Below the pieces are notes generated by a model, which saw only the letters and a program-made list of their open reading frames with translations, ran no database searches and had not been told where the DNA came from. Made by a program: the position numbers and the translations under genes. DNA of 64,000 nt from Leidyana gryllorum EB-2025a (lineage: Eukaryota > Protista > Apicomplexa): assembly GCA_048772705.1 (NCBI GenBank), contig JBLWGC010000224.1, positions 1-64,000 of the forward strand. Reading direction: 5' to 3'. Numbering within the stretch: the stretch's first letter is position 1; every line of letters begins with the position of its first letter. Positions 1-63,228 of this stretch are shown one piece after another.

Positions 1-539
1 GATGCTTCGGTAGACGAGCCAGTGTACGGAGCGGTAGTGGAAGCCTCAGTAGACGCAAGAATGTGGGAAGTAGTACTCAATGCTGGCACTGTTGAGGTTG
101 CCGAGCCTTCCACCCCGCAATGGTACACAAGCCGATCCCCACAAAATTCGGGTCCCAATATGTAGCGGTTGGACTGCTTGACACACGATTGATTACAGTC
201 GCAGGTCGGTAATGAACAATCCGATGTTGTGGCGGATGTACATACTGGAGAAGTGGCACAAGAATCCAGGGTGAGTTTTTGTAGATCAGCAGCTCCTCGA
301 CAAGTACCGGAAACAGTGTCGAAATAGAACAGAGTACAATCCGAAGCTTGTTGACAAGAGTGTTGACAGTCCAAGGCGGAGGACGCTTTTCCCAACTCGA
401 GACCCAAGAACGAGTCGTCTTCAAATGCGAGAAACTTAAAACATCGCGGTCTTGGCGTCACCCCTCCTCCTTGGACTATCTCCGCTTGGACGGAGGTGAG
501 GAGAGTGATGAAGATGGAGAACTCAATATGCTTGATCAT
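1..539 (-). CDS. Secreted Cys-rich PAN/Apple-like domain protein with Ser/Thr-rich tail (runs off the left edge; absent from ORF track)
   Basis: Manual translation from ATG 539 is open to base 1. It reads MIKHIEFSIFITLLTSVQA (signal-like), then C..DCQHSCQQASDCTLFYFDTVSGTC (Apple-type CxxxC-x5-C spacing), then ILGPEFC and an S/T-rich segment. Confidence 0.65.
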   Translation of the reverse strand, partial: MIKHIEFSIFITLLTSVQAEIVQGGGVTPRPRCFKFLAFEDDSFLGLELGKASSALDCQHSCQQASDCTLFYFDTVSGTCRGAADLQKLTLDSCATSPVCTSATTSDCSLPTCDCNQSCVKQSNRYILGPEFCGDRLVYHCGVEGSATSTVPALSTTSHILASTEASTTAPYTGSSTEA

Positions 540-8593: not shown

Positions 8594-10508
8594 CTACTTT
8601 GGCGGACCTATAATCGTCTTGATGAAGTCTTCATGAGACACCTCCTTTGCGCACATTAGGAGATAATTGTGGCCTACCACGCCCTTTCAGCTTGCATACG
8701 CCAACACAGACTTACAGTGATCCACCAAGTCTCCGAGTTGTAGCTCAGAACCCACTGCTTGAATAGCCAAGGCGGCGGGTCTGGTCACCACCGAACCACA
8801 TAACCTTCGGACCAGTGTTTGCAGGAGGGACTGTGGTTGGAAGAAATCAATCGCGTTCCCTTCAAGTTACCAACAAGCGCCTCACCGTTACTTCAAATTT
8901 GTGTGCAGCTCGCAGCAAAGCCAGTAGCTTCGAGAGAGAAGTGTCCTCCGCCATATATTTGCAACTGGAATGTTACCGATCAGCCAGAAACCCTACCTAC
9001 TCTCCGCTTACTCGTCAGTATGCATGAAAGTGACCACATTTTCCATCACCTCAGCGCAAGTATCCGTGACCTCCACGATCGTCTCACTCTTCGTAGTACC
9101 ACGAGGGATAATGGCATTGCCTTCTACATTCTCTTGTTCTATCATCAAAGCGCTTGTCTCGCCATCCACCCCACCAAACGAAGCGTAATTGAATTCACCA
9201 GACGTACTCTGTTGCTGATGCGTCGAAGTCGAGTCCCGTGTGTCGGGTGCTGCATCAGTCTTGTGGCTTATTGGCCCGAGCTGTTCTTTCCCTTCCTCTC
9301 CTAAGTGTGTCTCGAACCACTGATCGCCTCAGGCATAACAATCCGGGAGGATAAAGGGCTGACCTTTGATCGGGCCGTGAGCACGTGCCGGTTGGCCTTG
9401 ATGGATCGTCGATCGACCAGAATCGTCACGTCGTGATTCGAAGGCGAGGAGAAATATTGATGCATTTCTTCGGCCCATGATTTAGGTTGGGGTAAATGAC
9501 GTCCTGGACTTGCGGCAACTCCGACAAAAACCTCAATCTCGCACTTAATTATGAGAGCATCACCAGACATGGACAATAATCTGTTCAAAGTCTGCCCTTC
9601 CACTGTCAATGTCAATGATCCCAGATTTCTGTCGTCAACACCACATCCAATCACCTTTGATGAACTGGCTCCATCCCCATGAGCTCGACCCTTCCGCAAA
9701 CTTTTGACGGGTGAACGAACGTCCGGAATTAGCGACTGCAGATTACACGTCACCACGGCGCCTCTGATGCGACTGACAAAGAGACGCACAACAAAACAGT
9801 CGAGAACTTATTGAATCCCATCGCACCACCGCGCTATCATTAAAGAGAGCGCGCGCATCAGACGTAGAATCAATAAAACACATGTGACAGTCACGTTCGT
9901 CAATGGTGTGTGTGCATCTCTCGCTCATATTGAGCCAAGTTGTGAGCCCCCGACCCACCGGCGACGGAGATAAGCGTGTCTCAGTCCCATAGGCGTGTTG
10001 TGGGGAACAACAAATCCGCATTACATTTCGTTGAATACGTCAAGAGTCTCCCTCTGCCACTCCTCGGGAGTAAAGCAGAGAATCAACATACCTTTCGACC
10101 CAGACTCATCGATTAGGTAGCAGCCGAATATTGCATACGCTTTTGGAACTTCCAATGATTTGAGATCCAGCGACAGGAAAAGTGACACATGCCCTCGACC
10201 AGCTTGAGAGAGATCACCGTACGGGTACAGCTTTAGCTGCCAGAAGCCTCGCTCCCTGTCTCCGAAACGCTGACTCCAGATGAGGCCGCCGTTCTCATCC
10301 TCCAGAGCTGCGAACACAGTGCACGTAAGTTGTCACAGTACTAACCCTCTACGCACGCGAGAGCTCGCAACTCCCAGAAATTGTACACCTTCCACCGGTA
10401 TTCGAGGTGGCTCCATCGAGGACGAACGGACTCATTGATGCTGGGACCGGTGGTGCTGCCTGGAGCGTCAGTAGCAACAGCGGCAGCCGGTAGTCCGTGG
10501 TCAGACAT
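8594..10508 (-). CDS. MATH + BTB/POZ domain protein (SPOP-like cullin-3 adaptor), multi-exon
   Basis: MATH: YRWKVYNF, WQLKLYPYG, HVSLFL. BTB: DVTILVDRRSIKANRHVLTARS and LLRAAHKFEV. The spliced last exon ends IIGPPK* at 8594-8596. Confidence 0.82.
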
Positions 10509-50702: not shown

Positions 50703-50756
50703 CCTAACGACGTGTTCTTATTATTTCGACACTAATTTTCAGTAGTCGCTCACCTC

Positions 50757-51859
50757 ATGCTCTCCACCTCTGCTCCACTCCGCTCGCTGCTCTTTCGCCC
50801 TTCCGTGCGGGCGCTGGCATTGACCCCCTGCAGCAGCAGAGCTGTCAGACCCACATTTTTCAAAGCGTCCTTGTTCGCCAAGACGCCCAAATTCGCTGCG
50901 ACCTGGGCGCCCCCTGCGATAGCTCTCAATGACCTGGACGGTGTGGTCGCCCAACATCTTCCAGACTCTCCTCACTGGAGGGCAGCTGCCAAAAACAACG
51001 TAAGGCCGTCGGCGGCGTGGCACAATGCATGGTACACTACAGATTGGCGAGGCGGACGTGCGACTTGCTCACGCTGTCTACACCCGCGAGGAGATGGATA
51101 ATGTCGAGATTACTCACATCGTCCCGCGCGGTCTCACTAACCGCGCCGCCTACGGCACCGTGTGGACCCTCCGTCGCTTGTACGATGTCGTGTCCGGTTA
51201 CGCCTTCGGCCTTCGGAATGAGGCTTGCATGATTCGTAGAATTGTCATCCTCGAAACGGTCGCCGGTGTTCCCGGCATGGTTGGTGCTGCTATCCGCCAC
51301 TTCCGTTCTCTCAGAAAAATGCGATGTGACTATGGATGGATCCATACACTCTTAGAAGGTACGCTATGCACTCTACAGAGATGTCGGCCACCCCATTCTC
51401 CCTCAGAGGCCGAGAATGAGCGTATGCATCTTATGACTGCTCTCCTGCTTGAGAATCCGGGCAAATTCGTCCGTGCTCTGGTTATGGCCGCTCAAGCTGG
51501 CTTCTTGGGTTTCTATACCCTCATGTACACCCTCTCTCCCGCGTATTGCCACCGCTTCGTAGGGTACCTCGAGGAAGAGGCGGTGAAGACTTACACCAAA
51601 CTCGTTGAACTAATTGACAAAGGGAAGCTCAAAGGCTTCGAAATCGCTGCCCCACCCGCCTCGCGCGCTTACTGGGGCTTGCCTGCTGATGCAACTCTAC
51701 GCGACGTCTTCCTTGCGATGCGTGCAGGTAAGGGTACCATCCAAGTGCACCTCCGGTTACTGTTCTCTCACCGCAGACGAAGCTCACCACCGGGAAGTGA
51801 ACCACGTCTTCGCTGATTTGGGCCCCGACAGCGTTAACCCGTTCCCCCCTGGATACTAG
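50757..51859 (+). CDS. AOX: Alternative oxidase, 4 exons
   Basis: Arg/Ser-rich presequence; LETVAGVPGMV, LLE|EAENERMHL, HRFVGYLEEEAVKTYT and RA|DEAHHREVNH. Confidence 0.96.
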
Positions 51860-51989
51860 ACCTTTTTTCCACAAGTTGTTAACATCAGAGAGATACCAAA
51901 CCTGCCATCCGGACCATAGCTTGGCGCGTGTGTGCGTACCCCGGCATACCGAAAAAGGCAAGAAATCCCTGTGCTAGAACAATTCAACG

Positions 51990-52208
51990 ATGGCTCTGGA
52001 ATGGTCGGACATCTTCAAATTCATCTGCGCCTTCTTCTTACCTCCATTGGGGGTCTTCTTTGAAGTTGGCTGTGATACGCACCTGGTTATCAACATCCTG
52101 CTCACCATCCTTGGTTATGTTCCAGGTAAGGAATGTGTGCGACTTGAATCACCATCATCATCTTGACCAGGAATTATACACGCGTTCTACGTAATCCTCA
52201 AGTATTGA
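51990..52208 (+). CDS. PMP3: Pmp3/RCI2 (UPF0057) proteolipid, 57 aa, 2 exons (absent from ORF track)
   Basis: MALEWSDIFKFICAFFLPPLGVFFEVGCDTHLVINILLTILGYVP|GIIHAFYVILKY*, with intron 52126-52170. Confidence 0.92.
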
Positions 52209-52256
52209 TAGATGTATATAGCCACCCTCACTTTTCGTCGTATTCACTCCTCTGTT

Positions 52257-52665
52257 CTATCCACATGATTTATGAGGCGTTGGCTGACTAGCTACAACAA
52301 ATTCGAATGGTTGACGGCATGTTGGACACAGATCGTCATTCACTCCAGACTTCTTTGGTGCCTGCTCGAACCATTCATCCAGGCAGTGCAAATGGAATTG
52401 ATGAGTACAACTTCCGTAACCAGGTGGACAGTGAGGGCCGGCGTACAAGCACCTGCAAAGATTGGTTGGAGAATGCAAAATTGATCCAGAATGTTGCGCA
52501 CTTTGGACAAGCCTTTTCGAAGGGTTCTTTGCAGATGGCACATTCGTCACTGGTCACATTCCACCGCCAGAAACCAACTGCCCGAACAGATACAACCTCG
52601 GCTGTAAACATTGGGTGTTCGACAAAGGGTGCACAACGCGTGGGTACAATAGCAATATGAGCCAT
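52257..52665 (-). CDS. APC11: Anaphase-promoting complex subunit 11-like RING-H2 protein, 2 exons
   Basis: AVGFWRW..CAICKEPFEKACPK|CLYAGPHCP..GSCTHQFHLHC..W..CPTCRQPF. The start may instead be 52611. Confidence 0.8.
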
Positions 52666-52709
52666 GGCACTAGGAACTTAAAGTCTGAGGCCCTTGAAAA
52701 AACCCTTTT

Positions 52710-53327
52710 ATGGACGAGCCGGACATCAATTTTGACCTGGATGAAAGGGTGAAGGGATTAGAATCGTATCTGGACGATGTGGTGCGCAAGAAGGTGGTTG
52801 ATGCTGAGGCTGTCGAGCGGGAGGTACACAATCAACTATTGGAACTGTAAGGCAAATGTAAAAAGTGGCTCTTTTCAAGTCACGTCCCCTGTTGTTCAGC
52901 CGCAATCTTCGAAGGCAATTGCAGCGATTGGTGAAGGAGAATCGTAAGGATCTCAAAGCCCTGATCGATTTGGGGTGTGAGACATTTGTGGAAGCATATG
53001 TGTAAGCGCGTGTTGCTAGCAGATTCTGTGTGATCGAAGAGTTCTATCTTTGCAGCCCTGATACTCAATTGGCATATGTCGCATTGGTGGGGGGATTCTA
53101 CATGCAGATGACTCCTCTTGAGGCGATAAGCTTCCTGGAAAAGCGCATCGCGATTCAGGAAGAGCGGCATGGTGTCGCCATTCAACGTCTGGCCTACGCC
53201 AAAACCGAAGTTCGAGTGGTAGGATATCTGATAATTGGACAAGTTGTCACACACCATTGTGTAGTTCATCAAAGCCCTGGGCACAATAATGGAGCTAGGA
53301 GCAGGTACTGGAGACGGCAGCCAGTAA
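52710..53327 (+). CDS. UXT: Prefoldin alpha-like protein UXT, 4 exons
   Basis: Spliced LIDLGCETFVEAYV|PDTQLAYVALVGGFYMQMTPLEAISFL. Confidence 0.82.
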
Positions 53328-53340
53328 AATTTAGGTACAA

Positions 53341-56300
53341 ATGCAGCTAGTTCCGCCCGTAGAGACCACTGACCCTAAAATAATTTCTGCTGAGAACCAC
53401 AGCACTTCAGAGCCCCCATCAGAAGCACCTCGAGGTGTTAGTGACGCGAATGTTGAGGAGGTTGAGGAAGAGGATGAGGACGAGGAATCAGTGTCGGACA
53501 GGAGCTGGAGGGGCGTCGGATCTGCATACCGATTAGTTCGTTTTCGCCCAGGGCATTGGATCACTTTTGAAGTACCCACCTCTCTAGCCAAGGATATCAC
53601 CAACTATCCCATGGGATTGCGAAGTAACATTCAGGAAGCTGTCATGAAACGATTGCATGAGATCGATTGGTTCAACAAAACTTCGCTCACTCCTCCTACT
53701 GAGAACGAGCCGGAACCGAATGGTACACAGAGCTTGGGGCGTACTCCAGAAACAGTAACTCGAAGTCTTCTGAGAGAGGAGCTGCAGTTAGCCGACGAAG
53801 ACTTGGAAACTGTTCAGCAAGTACCTCCGTCCAAATTGTTACCCCGTTTCTTATGGTACCAAAGAGAACTCGAGCACCACTATGGAGTGGACGAAATCAG
53901 AGAATTTACCGAGGGACCCACACGTGGGGGCAAGGCCTACTCGCGGGTTGCAGCTGCCTTGTCCGATCAGCCTCCACCTCCTGAAATCGTCGCCGCTGAC
54001 CCGCCCCCTGTGCCGCCTACAATCATAAGCGAGCTTGCCCCCGCTCCCGTTGCAGAGCAGCCGTCTACCGCCCCCGAATTAGGCCAAGCTGAGGCCGTTG
54101 TAATCCCAGCAGACAACGAAGAGTTACCCACAATGGAAGATGCCAAGAGTCCCTTGGTCATCCGTAAGAAGAAGAAACGCGTCATGCAGGTGAGCTCACC
54201 TCCACCTTCACTTCCATTCAGCCTTCAGGCGCAACATATTGGCACTCTGGCCCCTGTAGACGAGCTCCACGATCCACTATTCGGTACCGTGGGACCCAGT
54301 AACCACCGTGACCGGACCGATGCGCTGTCCCTAACAATTCGAGACATGGCTTTCCGTCTTAGCCGCCATGGGACTGTCGCAGATCCCAAAAGCTATCTGG
54401 GCAAAGGGGAAATGAGCTACGATAAAGACGACCCTTTCTTCGACGACGAGGATTTGGTGAGCGCAGATGACAGATCGTTGTTGAACTCTAACCCTTGACA
54501 GATCAATGAGATCGGACTCACCAAAGAGCAGTTCCTCGCGCGCATCCAAGAGAGAGACTCAGAGGATGAAGACCACGAGTCCGGCTCGGAGATAACCGAT
54601 GATGGTGAGTCACGAGAAGTCATTTTCTCCACTCATATGGTGTCACTTTTCAGATCACGGGATGGACAGACTCGGGGCCGTCTACGAGGGAACTGAAGAC
54701 TTGTTCTATTTGGATAACATAAGTGAGACGTCGGACTTGGGTGAAGAGGACGAGGAACCCGAAACAAAACCTTCGGAAGATACAAAGAAAGTGAAGGAAC
54801 CGCGTGTTATTGAGGTCTACGACTTCGTCAAACCGACAAATCTTCCCCTGGTTTTCAACCCCAAAGGCTGGAAAGCGTCCAGATCTAAGGTGAGCCTTCA
54901 TTGTGTTGACACAGATCATTGACTTCCTTTCCTTCTTTAGCTACCTGCCATGGCAATTCTCTTCTTCATGTCCCTTGAGCTCGTCATACCGCCAAAGCGA
55001 CTAACCATTCTACAGCGAAGTATCTTCGACACCTACGAACTGGTGCAAGTGGACACTTCGAAACAGCCTCCCGCCTTATCACTTAATGAGAAAAGTGTTT
55101 CACTGGTGACAGATTATCTGCGCGAGGTGTTTGCATATTGCTATGTAACCTTTCTGGCTCCGTTTGGTCCCCAAGCGGACCCCATACAAGGTACTGTTTC
55201 GTTGATCAACACCAGTCGTTGACCTCCTTGTGTGTAGGTATGTCAGAAGTTACTTTAGCTCGGAACAGCCGTGTGGTGACTGCACGCCTGGAGAAGAGCG
55301 ACATTGAGACGAAAAATGCTTTCACACATGGCTTTCCCGACCCGGACCCAGACACCCCCGCGTTGATTGACTCCGTCATTCGACAACAGATTACTCCTTA
55401 CGCACCTCCGGCAGATGTACTGAAACGGTGGTGGTGGACGGCGATAGCTGGACAGACCGCTCGGGTATTCGCTGTTGCTGAAGATAAAATGTATCATGCT
55501 TTGGAATCGTTCTTTCAGAAACACAGTGCAACTTTCACTGTTCCGGCGATGAACGAGCGAATAAAGGGGTGGTGTGTGCGGAGCAAACAAGCTGCAAAAC
55601 TACGACAACAACTGAGAGCGACGCTGGATGGTTCCGGCAAGGCGGATAGTGTCATAGAACTAGACGGCGACGGACCCCCTGACAACGCCCGTAACGAAGT
55701 CAATTCTGAATTGCGAGCTGTCGAAAGCGAGCTCGCAAGGGATGATGCAATGTTCCTGCCCTTCGACGAGCTGGCAAGTGTTGTTGTTGATTATGTTATA
55801 GCATATAATCTTCGGCGTAATGTATTCCGTGACTTGGCAGAAGCTGAACAGTTCCAGTTGATCTGGATCCTATACCCACCAGTGCCAAGCGGGGAGCCAT
55901 ATAATCCAGAGATTGACCGAGCGAAGATTGATAAGCTCTTCAGTCCAAGTTGGGCGTCAAGACTGATTCCGCTGATAGAAGATGCCAGCACGGCGGTACT
56001 GGAAGCAACTTTGAAACCCAATGTGGCGTGGCTGGAATGCCGTTTGAAGAAATTCCGTGAAATGCACAAGTGGCCCCAGATGTACGAGGATCGCAAGCTT
56101 CGTCCTGCGAAGCCTCAAATGGTGTTGAGCATGTCGACAGAGGCCAAGAAGGAGGAGCCGGTGTCCTCGGCGGCGGGAGGCCGGGGCAAAAAAGGAGATC
56201 AGAGTGGAGGGGTATCCACGACGAATAAACGCAAGCGTGCAACAGACGCTGGCGGGGCTGCCAAGGCTCCGAGCGGAGCGGGTGAGGAAGCGAACCCCCC

Positions 56301-57348
56301 ACCTAACAAGCGGAAGAGAGTTTCCAGTCAACAGACAACCAACCAGAACATGGCCGGGGGGGCGGCGGCTCAGGGAGCCAGTGGCCCCACTATAGTTGGG
56401 AGTCTTGTGCAACGGCATGATCTTACCCGAATACTGTCGTTGATCCAAGCATGTCCGCTGATGCTGCCTTTGAGGATGACGTGTCGTATTGCTCTGCCCC
56501 GGACGGGGGGAACCGCGATTGAGAGTGAGGGCCCCCCCACATCTGTTAGCAAAGCCAGCCGATCGCCGGCGACCAAACAGAGTGTCACTGGGTCCTCTGT
56601 GACGTCAGCGGGTGCGGACCAACTTGCTTCGCACCCTCAAGTACAGCTAGAATGGTATTTACATTCGATGGATAACTGGGAACGGCAGGACGTCACTCTT
56701 GTGAGCAAAGGTGTTGAAGGCATGAAAGACAATGCGCGTTTTGCTTCTGTGAGTGAGGCACTGAAAGCCGCTGAAAGTGCATTGGGAGGCACAGCTGTTC
56801 TGGACACGGCTATAAGTCTGAGTGAGGAGAAGCTGCGTCCCTGGCAGGTGTTCCAAGTTTCGTCGGCACCTGCGATGTTTCCGTTCAGTGGCAAAGGTCA
56901 CGGAGGGCTCGAGCCCCCCTCCGATCCGGAATTTAATTGGAGAGAAGGGATCGCAATACTAGATTTGTTGGCGATTCATTATTGGATACAGAAACATTCG
57001 ATACCAAAGAATGCAAAAGGCGACAATTGGGTGATACTGAATCTCGTCCTGGCCTCTGGGACAGAGCTCGCAGGCAAAGTTGGACCCTGCCGACGAATAC
57101 AGCTGCCGGCGAGCATCACCTCGGGAATAATGCAGTCAAGAATGGATTATGCTCCCCGATGCAAATCAACGGGAGAGATTGAGTTAGACCGCGTCCGAGC
57201 TGGTCAGCTTCAAACGCTGTCGCGCATCAACCAATATTTGTGCAATTTCTATCGCCACTCTATGAAACTTCCTTCTGCGCTCCGCCGGGGATCCGTATTC
57301 GGTTGCGGAAGCGGCACTGCGCGTTCGGATGAACCCCAAACACATTGA
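53341..57348 (+). CDS. Large nuclear protein with HPC2/ubinuclein (HRD/HUN)-like motif, multi-exon
   Basis: SYDKDDPFFDDEDL resembles the HRD motif. It also has acidic tracts and NKRKR NLS-like motifs, with the ORFs linked by short introns. Confidence 0.6.
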
Positions 57349-59466: not shown

Positions 59467-60353
59467 TCAGTCCAATAGTCCGAATGCTTGATCGACCACT
59501 CGAATTTCGGTAGCAGTTGATTCGTGTCCCACGAATCCTGTCCAGTCGTTGACTACTGTCCCGGCGGCCAGCAAGTCAGTTCCTCTGTTGATAGTTCCCA
59601 CGGCCAGAGGGATATCAAGCATCCGCGACAGAGCTGTCACTTCAGCTTGGGGCGTCATGGCGTGGACCTGAGGTGGCACAACAAGATGAATTGGCGGACT
59701 ACGTACGAAGTGGGGGTGGGGTGGGCTGGAGTGGGGACCTCTCGATGTCTCCGCCCACACTGAATATATGATAGTTGGGCACTTACCATTCCTCCCTTGT
59801 TATTCAAAACGCAATACTGGCCAACCAGCACTTCGTTCTTTACTGTGGTGGTAAAGAGCTCTACGCCAAGAACGTCGCTGATGATCTCTCTTGTTTCCCG
59901 ATCGAGGTCAGGATGGCCAATGGCGACATAATCGTTACAGGCCACAACATTTCCCAATGCTGAAAGTCTCTCCTCCACTCTGACTACTTTTATAGCAGAC
60001 GGAAGAGAGTTTCTCAAATGCATCAACTCTTGATCAGTAGTGGTCGCAGGGACCAGCAAACCATTTTTGTTACCTGTGTGACACATTTCAGGTGGTGCGT
60101 GTGTGTGAGTCTAACTTACCCACGGTACAGCTGCCGACCACTTTGGCGCCAGCGATAGTGGTGCGAATCACAGGAATGTGTTCGGAACATTCGGCCTCGA
60201 ATGTGGAGTAGAAGTTTTCGTTAGCTCCGGAGGCAACCAGACAGTACTTATTGGTCAGTCGAGCGAAGACGCCAATCTCACTGGAGGATTCACACTTTGC
60301 ACCTGGGAGAGATGAGATAGTTGGGCAAACCAATTTGACTTACGGACTACCAT
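59467..60353 (-). CDS. EIF6: Eukaryotic translation initiation factor 6, 4 exons
   Basis: [48 protein letters not shown] and VVNDW. Confidence 0.95.
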
Positions 60354-60403
60354 TGTAAGTACCTCCTTGGAAAAAAATTGGTTCTTTTTACTACTGAAGA
60401 TCG

Positions 60404-60920
60404 ATGACCCGTGTACACCATCGAGGACTGACAGCTGATGAGGTGGAAGAGATTCGGGAGGCATTTAACCTGTTTGACACTGATGGAACAGGGCTTATAA
60501 ATCCTGGGGAGCTGAGGGCGGCGATGGAGTCTCTGGCGTTCGAAGATAAGAATCCGACAATATACAATATGGTGGTCGAACTACAGCGGGAAAACAGCGA
60601 GTCTATTGACTTTGAGCGCTTTTTACGGGCGCTCACCTCAAAGTTGGGAGACAAGGAAAGCAAGGAGGGGATTCGGAAGATCTTCGACCATTTCGACCAA
60701 GATCGAAAAGGTGGTATTAGCTTCAAGGATCTGAAGAGAGTAGCAGAAGAGTTGGGTAAGTGGTGGTTTTATGATGGCAGAACATGTGCTCTGATCGACC
60801 ACAGGCGAGCAACTGTCCGACGAGGAGTTGACTGAGATGATACACAGAGCGGACACGAATGACGACAACGAGATTTCTTTTGAGGATTTCTTCGCAATAA
60901 TGACTAGGAAAGCATTCTAG
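60404..60920 (+). CDS. Centrin (alveolate CEN2/ICL1-type), 2 exons
   Basis: GLTADEVEEIREAFNLFDTDGTG, KNPTIY, LKRVAEELG|EQLSDEEL.EMI.RAD and IMTRKAF*. Confidence 0.92.
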
Positions 60921-60942
60921 GGGCATTTTAGACTAGTGAGGA

Positions 60943-61419
60943 ATGCTGACGGACGACGAAATCGAGTGTCTTCGGGCTGCCTTCCAGGCTTTCAGCCGAA
61001 CACCCCTAGGCGATGTGGATCCAAGGGAGCTTTGGGAAGCGTTGAGCTATGCTGGTTGCGCGAAGGGTGATGAAGGGCAGTATCTGAAAGAGGTCTTGGA
61101 GCCATTAGTGTCTCTGGAGGTGTCCTCTATCACCTTTGAGGAGTTTCACCACATGTTGAGAAGGCGCTTGGGTCATGAGCGGTCACGATACGGTCACCGG
61201 CATCTTTTCGAATTGCTTGACCACGACAAGAAAGGATACATCGGACTGAGTGACCTCAAGACCATCAGTGTTGTGGCCGGCGAAAGGTCGAATTTTACAA
61301 TCTACGAACTCAAAGCCCTCTTCTCTGCAGTCACTGGTCGCAAAGATTACCATCTCACTTTTGACGAATTTGCTGCAGTACTCCACCAGTTAGATAGCTC
61401 TTCACCCAGAAGAAGATGA
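60943..61419 (+). CDS. Divergent centrin-like EF-hand protein, intronless
   Basis: LTDDEIECLRAAF, VDPREL, ITFEEF, DHDKKGYIGLSDL and LTFDEF. Confidence 0.75.
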   Translation: MLTDDEIECLRAAFQAFSRTPLGDVDPRELWEALSYAGCAKGDEGQYLKEVLEPLVSLEVSSITFEEFHHMLRRRLGHERSRYGHRHLFELLDHDKKGYIGLSDLKTISVVAGERSNFTIYELKALFSAVTGRKDYHLTFDEFAAVLHQLDSSSPRRR

Positions 61420-63228
61420 CTGTGTCACGTGCAGCAAGCCGAAAGCGCCTGAATAACGCAAAACCTTCCACACAGCAACTTGACCGACTACTACAGCATC
61501 TTCAAATCGAGCATATCCCTTCTTCCCTCAGCGGACGAACTGAACAGCAGAATCGCATTCACCAAGACGTAAAATCATCCATATCTCAGGCTGGAAAGGA
61601 AGGACATATATTGTGTGAGAGTCTCAACAGCTCAGCCCCTGCCTTTCAACACCATTATTCCTTGCAGACCTCTATGGTCAGCCTGGCACTGGCAAAACTG
61701 CCACTGTGCGCCACATATGTACCCACTTCACCGAGACTAAATCGACTATCCCTATCCATTATCATCAAATCAATGCCCTGACATTAACTTCTCCTGGCAG
61801 CCTCTTTGTTGCTATCTATCGGAGTGTGAGTTTGTCAGTGGAAGTTACGTGCGATATGTGTGTGTGTCCCTGATCACTTTCAGATCGTGTCCAGTGAGGG
61901 TTCGGTTGGTCGCGTGAAGCACCCAACGAGTATCGCTGGGTGCTTTGAAGCGTTAGAGCGACGGTTCAGGAGCGATAAACCACCCAAACATCACCAGTGA
62001 GCACCCCGCCTCGCCCCGCAACACGACTGCCACAGTATCATTGTCATTGACGAGTTCGACAACCTCTTGGCAGTGCGGCCAGGCAGGGAGACGAGGGACT
62101 TTCATGATAGACTCTACAGTTTGTTTGATTGGCCAGCCGCTGTCGGCGCTGGTCTCACATTGATTTGTATCGCAAATACCCTCTGTTTGCCTAAGTTTCT
62201 CCTTCCACGATGTTTCTCCCGACTTGGTGAGCCCTCATCCCCGTGACAGGACGGTCGGCTTTCATCATTTCAGGCTTCGGCCACATAAACTTTCCCACAT
62301 ATACCTTCGAAGAGCTAACTCAGATTGTGCGGGATCGTTTCGTCAACGCGAAGTGTCCTTTAGAATCTTGTATGGATGAGTAAGTCACCGAGACGTACAC
62401 AAAAGGACAAGTGACATCTCTGCCTGGTCAGAACTGCTCTGATCTTGTTGTGCCGAAAGGTGGCCGCCCTCTCGGGCGATGTGCGCTTGGCTTTGTCGCT
62501 GTGTCATGCTCTGGTGAAAGAAGCTACCGACGAAGGTCGGAAGGTGACGCCGAGCGATGTTACTCTTCGAACTAAGAGTTTGTTCAACTCGGTAAGCATG
62601 TTGCACTCAAGCCCGTGCCACCCGTGACCAGGCTATCGCCGAGTTTGCGGCAGAGCTACCCTTCCATACAACTTTGATCTTATTTTGCATTGTGCGCCTC
62701 TTCCTTCGAACTACGATACCTGATGACACCCTCGGGTTTGCTGTGAAGCTGCTGGAAATCCGTGAAGTCTTTTGCCAAACTTTGAGCTCGTAAGCAAGAC
62801 ATCGGGATTGCACACGTTTCCACACTCTTTGTGTAAACAGACTGAACCTCGAGGTCAATGATTCTCCATCGATCTGTATGGATGTGGAAACCCTTATGAT
62901 GGACAGTTTGGATGAACTCTGCACTTCTGGTGTTCTTCAATGGTCATATCATATGCCTATGCGGGTGGAGATAACAACCCGCAGTGGGCGAGCAGAAAGT
63001 CGAAGGCGAGCGGTTCGCAGATGCGATCAGCAGGGCTTGCAGCGATGGGGTCAATCCGCTGTAACGCTTATGATGTCGGTGAGCCCTTTTCTTTCAGCAT
63101 TATCAACAGCTCTGATCCCAGCCAGCAGAGTTGATAACTGGCATCGACAATGGGGGCCAATTGAAAGCACAGACAGTGCAAGTGTCGATGCGAGCCCTGA
63201 AAGAGCAACTCAGTATCGTCTGAGGTGA
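61416..63228 (+). CDS. ORC1/CDC6-family AAA+ replication initiator (no BAH domain), multi-exon; 3' end uncertain
   Basis: IPSSLSGRTEQ; after intron 61615-61667, Walker A YLYGQPGTGKT; Walker B IIVIDEFD; YSLFDWP, CIANT and SGDVRLAL. Confidence 0.85.

Follow-up and report, generated by a model that had tools for sequence, protein, structure and literature searches.

A four-base stop/start overlap between a centrin paralog and ORC1 in the compact genome of Leidyana gryllorum

Genes and spacers at the locus

The window, that is, the whole stretch of DNA analysed here, comprises the 64,000 nucleotides at positions 1 to 64,000 of contig JBLWGC010000224.1 of the apicomplexan Leidyana gryllorum EB-2025a (assembly GCA_048772705.1; 15.5 Mb in 237 contigs). 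It was compared with G. niphandrodes and with the relative L024, a 21-kb Logan contig from run SRR31860986 with 45% GC. The genes and spacers under study are:

59467-60353, minus strand: eIF6 (Pfam eIF-6, gene model, synteny in G. niphandrodes and L024)
60354-60403, no strand: head-to-head eIF6/centrin spacer, 50 nt, with an A7-TT tract found also in the relative
60404-60920, plus strand: centrin 2, 155 aa, exons 60404-60755 and 60805-60920 with a 49-nt intron
60921-60942, plus strand: centrin/paralog spacer, 22 nt, with ATTTTA and a donor-like GTGAGG at 60936
60943-61419, plus strand: centrin-2 paralog, 158 aa, intronless and divergent, about 33% identity to centrin
61416-63223, plus strand: ORC1 (ORC1/CDC6 family), about 474 aa, nine exons
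ORC1 exons 1-5, plus strand: 61416-61614, 61668-61825, 61884-61996, 62036-62226, 62274-62379
ORC1 exons 6-9, plus strand: 62432-62591, 62632-62789, 62841-63078, 63122-63223

Centrin 2 has its best matches in the gregarines Protomagalhaensia wolfi (71%) and Gregarina niphandrodes (68%); with the best annotated ORC1 match, also in G. niphandrodes, this suggests that L. gryllorum is a gregarine apicomplexan. It is divergent from eIF6, with start codons 50 nt apart here and 24 nt apart in L024, and the spacer between the two genes is a candidate two-way minimal promoter. Most of this spacer is filled by an intron-like 45-mer (60355-60399; donor 5.5, AAG acceptor 4.5), and the centrin transcript would begin inside eIF6 if it were spliced. 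An E2F-like palindrome, TTTGGCGCCA, lies inside eIF6 at 60142-60151, about 260 nt upstream of centrin; there are three TGGCGCCA sites in 72 kb, and the palindrome in eIF6 is probably a chance occurrence.

Centrin closes with a TAG whose last base is 60920; the paralog opens with the ATG at 60943. The paralog is colinear with centrin over four homologous EF-hand units, of which only the third loop appears canonical. It matches residues 13-155 of G. niphandrodes centrin with an E value of 4.6e-15, and its tail exceeds that of centrin by 5-6 residues. Nucleotide identity to centrin at the three codon positions is 0.44, 0.58 and 0.31, and the chance of an ORF staying open under neutral drift to about 33% protein identity is about 1-2%. 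Because of these codon-position identities and the improbability of such a stop-free ORF under neutral drift, the paralog is judged to be a selected centrin copy with a signature of purifying selection. A word search found no homologue of it, and it is present neither at the syntenic locus in L024 nor beside centrin in G. niphandrodes. An annotated 36-aa EF-hand gene next to G. niphandrodes centrin (L004, 10896-11006) was considered as a counterpart and rejected; it arose when the assembly duplicated the 3' end of centrin next to a run of N. A further divergent centrin-like gene lies elsewhere in the genome (L003, 1459-1979, contig C92).

One could suppose that the paralog is no longer expressed, in which case the region would be the ORC1 promoter and leader with no functional overlap. 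The failure of the word search, the absence from relatives and the degenerate EF loops would all fit, as would an intron-like 60-mer at 60936-60995 (donor and acceptor both 4.5; for 22 nt of CDS, 0.0014 pairs of this kind are expected), removal of which would delete the paralog AUG from a read-through centrin RNA. Loss of the paralog, or of just its AUG, through splicing from the donor-like GTGAGG of the 22-nt spacer has a small probability. Against a silent paralog stand the intact colinear ORF, the 33% identity with its purifying-selection signature and the A/T run in the paralog's own spacer, and we consider this explanation improbable.

Searches with the ORC1 model used its exons one at a time, and the joined protein served only for coordinates and Met positions. 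Pfam AAA, Cdc6_lid and ORC1_wHTH are found in the expected order, the latter two as weak matches. Single exons match PDB ORC1 chains at E values of about 3e-4, and the best annotated match is that of exon 4 to the annotated G. niphandrodes ORC1 (55%). With AAA+ Walker A and B motifs, a lid and a winged helix, the predicted protein is a member of the ORC1/CDC6 family. As to the choice between ORC1 and CDC6, the best named matches are ORC1, in a protein with a short N-terminus and no BAH domain. The assembly yielded no second member of the family, and a metagenome scan gave no further ORC1 loci. Modelled introns are mostly 35-64 nt long with GTRAG donors.

The stop/start overlap at the ORC1 start

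61416-61419, plus strand: ATGA, in which the ORC1 ATG (61416-61418) overlaps the TGA (61417-61419) of the centrin paralog

The four shared letters contain the paralog stop and the ORC1 start out of frame, in a -4 geometry. Upstream, the ORC1 frame is closed by an in-frame TAG at 61395-61397, and a CAG lies at 61407-61409. These positions, the end of centrin and the 22-nt spacer had all been placed correctly in the original prediction. Its claim that no other Met precedes Walker A also agrees with the exon model, in which the next in-frame Met is residue 254, beyond Walker A (70) and Walker B (158). In P0121, the EukProt ORC1 of the closest relative (434 aa), the alignment begins at residue 6, which pairs with exon 1 residue 10 (E 1e-9), and the P0121 sequence is continuous across the predicted first ORC1 splice junction. 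The ORC1 proteins of G. niphandrodes and L024 begin about 20 residues further in. The overlap with an intact centrin-like CDS is thus borne out, by an EF-hand ORF under purifying selection on one side and an ORC1 start backed by relatives on the other.

An upstream exon spliced to the CAG at 61407-61409 had been named as a finding that would abolish the overlap. Splicing could remove the paralog through a nested intron of 474 nt, from the donor at 60936 to the CAG at 61409, which would leave the ORC1 AUG 6 nt past the junction. The donor's score of 4.5 is at the 25th percentile of modelled introns, and that of the acceptor is 2.8-3.1; such an intron would be far outside the usual range of 35-64 nt, and nearer acceptors (60995, 61330) are stronger. 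Alternatively, an EF-hand/ORC1 fusion could be made by a 32-nt intron at 61378-61409, which would be in frame. Here the donor at 61378 scores -2.7, and even the best donor within the paralog reaches 2.0, against a median of 5.6; an EF-hand N-terminus is found in none of the three close relatives' ORC1 proteins (P0121, G. niphandrodes, L024). Removal of the paralog and spliced fusion are, taken together, improbable. An upstream micro-exon for ORC1 was also tried and found unsupported. Because the paralog has no usable donor and the relatives have no EF-hand extension, an upstream exon or fusion is unlikely, and ATG 61416 is best taken as the true ORC1 start.

In about 190 kb of genome, on which all of the offset statistics rest, the -4 offset occurs at two of about 12 close tandem junctions. 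The second modelled case is an ATGA at 6308-6311 of L018 (contig C180), after NudC; an A-rich run is encoded in the NudC tail there, and the modelled downstream gene has no Pfam match. An A precedes the TGA in 6 of 36 modelled TGA stops, and overlap in the present genome exceeds chance expectation only weakly. When lost stops were simulated on real starts, -4 made up about 10% and -1 6.5% of the resulting overlaps; longer overlaps are presumably removed by selection. The contig starts of L012, L019 and L021 carry long ORFs resembling LTR-retroelement pol genes and were excluded from training.

Relatives, gene packing and promoter-like signals

L024 is syntenic with the window over about 10 kb (AOX, Pmp3, APC11-like, UXT-like, eIF6, centrin, ORC1). 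Conservation in related genomes had been proposed as a check on the overlap, and the ATGA is not kept: in L024 the ORC1 ATG follows the centrin TAA after 7 nt, with no paralog and no overlap, and in G. niphandrodes eIF6 and centrin are neighbours, while ORC1 lies unlinked on another scaffold with gaps of more than 1 kb. Tight centrin-ORC1 adjacency is therefore common to the window and L024, but the ATGA is not. Since the whole 10-kb block (AOX, Pmp3, APC11-like, eIF6) is syntenic, this adjacency is nothing special. The simplest history is probably that a centrin copy was inserted into an already tiny centrin-ORC1 spacer; its frame would have run on to the first stop, which was the TGA inside the ORC1 ATG-A.

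The part of the window at 50757-57348 that is syntenic with L024 holds AOX, Pmp3, the APC11-like and UXT-like genes and a large gene without a named function. Positions 53341-57348 are one gene, and an ab initio gene boundary at 55222/55240 was rejected as an intron by L024 orthology. In L024 itself, an AATAAA (8666-8675) overlaps the centrin stop within the 7-nt spacer, and the ORC1 stop overlaps that of a convergent RCC1-repeat gene (CTAG, 10140-10143).

Gaps of less than 55 nt occur in every gene orientation. Ab initio gaps include false boundaries, and the packing argument is carried by homology-checked gaps only. Head to head, these are eIF6/centrin (50 nt here, 24 in L024), X/AOX (19 nt in L024, 53 or -2 here) and APC11-like/UXT-like (32 nt in L024). 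Tail to tail they are 2 nt here and -4 in L024, and in tandem one orthologous pair has 13 nt here against 3 in L024, with centrin/ORC1 at 7 in L024. These very short spacers in all orientations are those of compacted genomes with overlapping transcription. As head-to-head pairs cannot share an mRNA, this lineage must initiate transcription with almost no intergenic DNA.

At 50704-50759, AOX (plus strand, ATG at 50757) and an unnamed minus-strand gene might share the palindrome CATG. They would do so if the minus-strand gene opens with an ATG-AG micro-exon followed by the strong donor at 50753 (score 7.0) of a 50-nt intron; splicing of this intron would, either way, put the beginning of the minus-strand transcript at the AOX CDS or within it.

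An A/T run of at least 6 lies within 35 nt of 15 of the 18 tight starts here and of all 12 in L024, compared with 6.9% of internal Met codons, and AATTT or AAATT is found at 9 of 18 tight starts compared with 3.8%; these sets of starts were chosen by hand and are small. Part of the runs in spacers may be terminators or plain non-coding composition. The A/T run lies in the upstream CDS both at the -4 junction after NudC and at an L024 junction of 0 nt, and the A-rich tract of L024 ORC1 covers the centrin stop. ORC1 in the window has no A/T run within 35 nt and is among the few tight starts without one. Further upstream, the paralog CDS contains the following:

61178-61415, plus strand: AUG-free stretch of 238 nt, candidate ORC1 promoter and 5' UTR
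61291-61297, plus strand: AATTTTA, candidate buried initiation element, 125 nt before the ORC1 ATG
61367-61371, plus strand: AATTT, candidate buried initiation element, 49 nt before the ORC1 ATG

The nearest AUG upstream of the ORC1 start is 241 nt away (P about 0.02), compared with 26-127 nt at 13 other tandem junctions, and the AUG-free stretch holds two AATTT words against 0.12 expected, both statistics being after the fact and from a single locus. The AATTT at 61367-61371 is also forced by Glu-Phe codons of EF-hand 4. General AUG depletion upstream of starts was not seen among 55 modelled starts. At this one locus, and after the fact, the AUG-free stretch with its AATTT words has the features that a leader beginning in the paralog's 3' half should show.

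Expression of ORC1 from the overlapping locus

The original prediction had left a choice between a di- or tricistronic mRNA linking centrosome and replication-licensing genes and an ORC1 promoter buried in the upstream CDS. In the former, ribosomes terminating at the TGA of a centrin-paralog-ORC1 mRNA would reinitiate at the overlapping AUG. The geometry resembles that of viral AUGA reinitiation sites (PMC10275272), and 201 polycistronic transcripts, covering 10.7% of genes, are known in C. parvum (PMC11761812). The 7-nt centrin-ORC1 proximity in L024, the lack of a proximal A/T tract at ORC1 and the recurrence of the -4 offset at two of about 12 junctions would also suit a shared mRNA. Reinitiation is nevertheless unlikely in our view, as genes are closely spaced whatever their orientation, the relatives do not keep the overlap and ORC1 in L024 is preceded by an A-rich tract of its own across the centrin stop. 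The region upstream of the stop is structurally ordinary (fold z = 0.44), and TGGGA, the TURBS motif, is absent within 380 nt upstream of the stop, the nearest copy lying at 61033. TURBS reinitiation needs an 18S-complementary motif in a structured upstream element (PMC10275272); stop and start do lie within 20 nt of each other and out of frame, but no such element was found just upstream of the stop. Nor is the overlap kept in L024 or G. niphandrodes, as conserved translational coupling would have it. A polycistron linking centrosome and replication genes is left unsupported by the absence of the overlap in L024, the generality of the synteny, the unlinked ORC1 of G. niphandrodes and the lack of a TURBS-like element. 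Slightly more doubtful is a lineage-wide form of termination-reinitiation at ATGA/TGATG, acting on multi-gene mRNAs and essential spliced genes such as ORC1 with no viral-type TURBS.

A bicistronic mRNA could also be read by leaky scanning, the mechanism demonstrated for green-algal bicistrons, which need an AUG-poor upstream ORF (PMC11892635). AUG depletion throughout the upstream ORF was not found here: six ATGs lie in the 5' half of the paralog, ahead of 61178, and eleven in the centrin locus, making leaky scanning very improbable. A trans-spliced operon is without support because acceptors are not enriched before downstream starts (5 of 14 tandem-downstream against 5 of 16 divergent starts, with a background of 27%).

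The best reading, and one that we consider probable, is that ORC1 has a separate capped mRNA made from a promoter buried in the paralog and overlapping the paralog mRNA. Transcription would start near the AATTT at -125 or -49, in the second half of the paralog CDS, and the first AUG of the capped mRNA would be 61416, found by ordinary scanning. The centrin and paralog mRNAs would end inside downstream genes. Longer read-through RNAs may exist, of which only the first ORF need be translated. Between the two options originally offered, the buried promoter best fits the AUG-free 238 nt with two AATTT words and the equally tight head-to-head and tail-to-tail neighbours, and the polycistron is unlikely. 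The overlap most likely reflects gene packing, not bacterial-style coupled translation.

Comparable packing is known from microsporidia. In E. cuniculi and A. locustae, as here, the DNA between genes leaves no room for promoters and terminators, and A/T-rich, AAATTT-like words immediately precede starts; signals have been displaced into neighbours, as they would have been here (PMC2803860, citing Williams et al. 2005). In E. cuniculi, transcription overlaps at more than 80% of tested loci, 5' ends lie 1-4 nt from the AUG, and CDS overlaps are very rare, with 9 cases after re-annotation (PMC2803860). In contrast, the CDSs themselves overlap here, the genes are intron-rich and the lineage is apicomplexan. 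C. parvum likewise has a compact apicomplexan genome with co-directional neighbours and extensive UTR overlap; its polycistronic RNAs are real and coexist with internal monocistronic RNAs (PMC11761812), as may be the case here. The C. parvum polycistrons were delimited with long reads, and an untranslated gap separates their ORFs. In calicivirus and influenza B TURBS an out-of-frame stop/start overlap also follows a long ORF (PMC10275272), whereas the L. gryllorum overlap has no TURBS-like motif or structure upstream of the stop and is not conserved in a relative. Bacterial and archaeal -4 coupling, as described in PMC10666635, has the identical four-base geometry; the present genes, however, are spliced nuclear genes, with divergent and convergent pairs equally tight. 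Green-algal bicistrons also place two nuclear ORFs on one strand at close distance (PMC7896298, PMC11892635), and differ from the L. gryllorum locus in that the upstream ORFs here contain many AUGs.

Genes of this kind will be fused or cut short by gene finders that do not allow overlaps, and our own first model fused the paralog and ORC1. If reinitiation proved true, the locus would join the few cellular cases in which translation is coupled behind a long ORF. The most likely reading is that L. gryllorum is another compacted eukaryote with promoters buried in neighbouring CDSs, here with intron-rich genes whose CDSs overlap, and the relative suggests how such an overlap may originate, through insertion of a gene copy into a 7-nt spacer.
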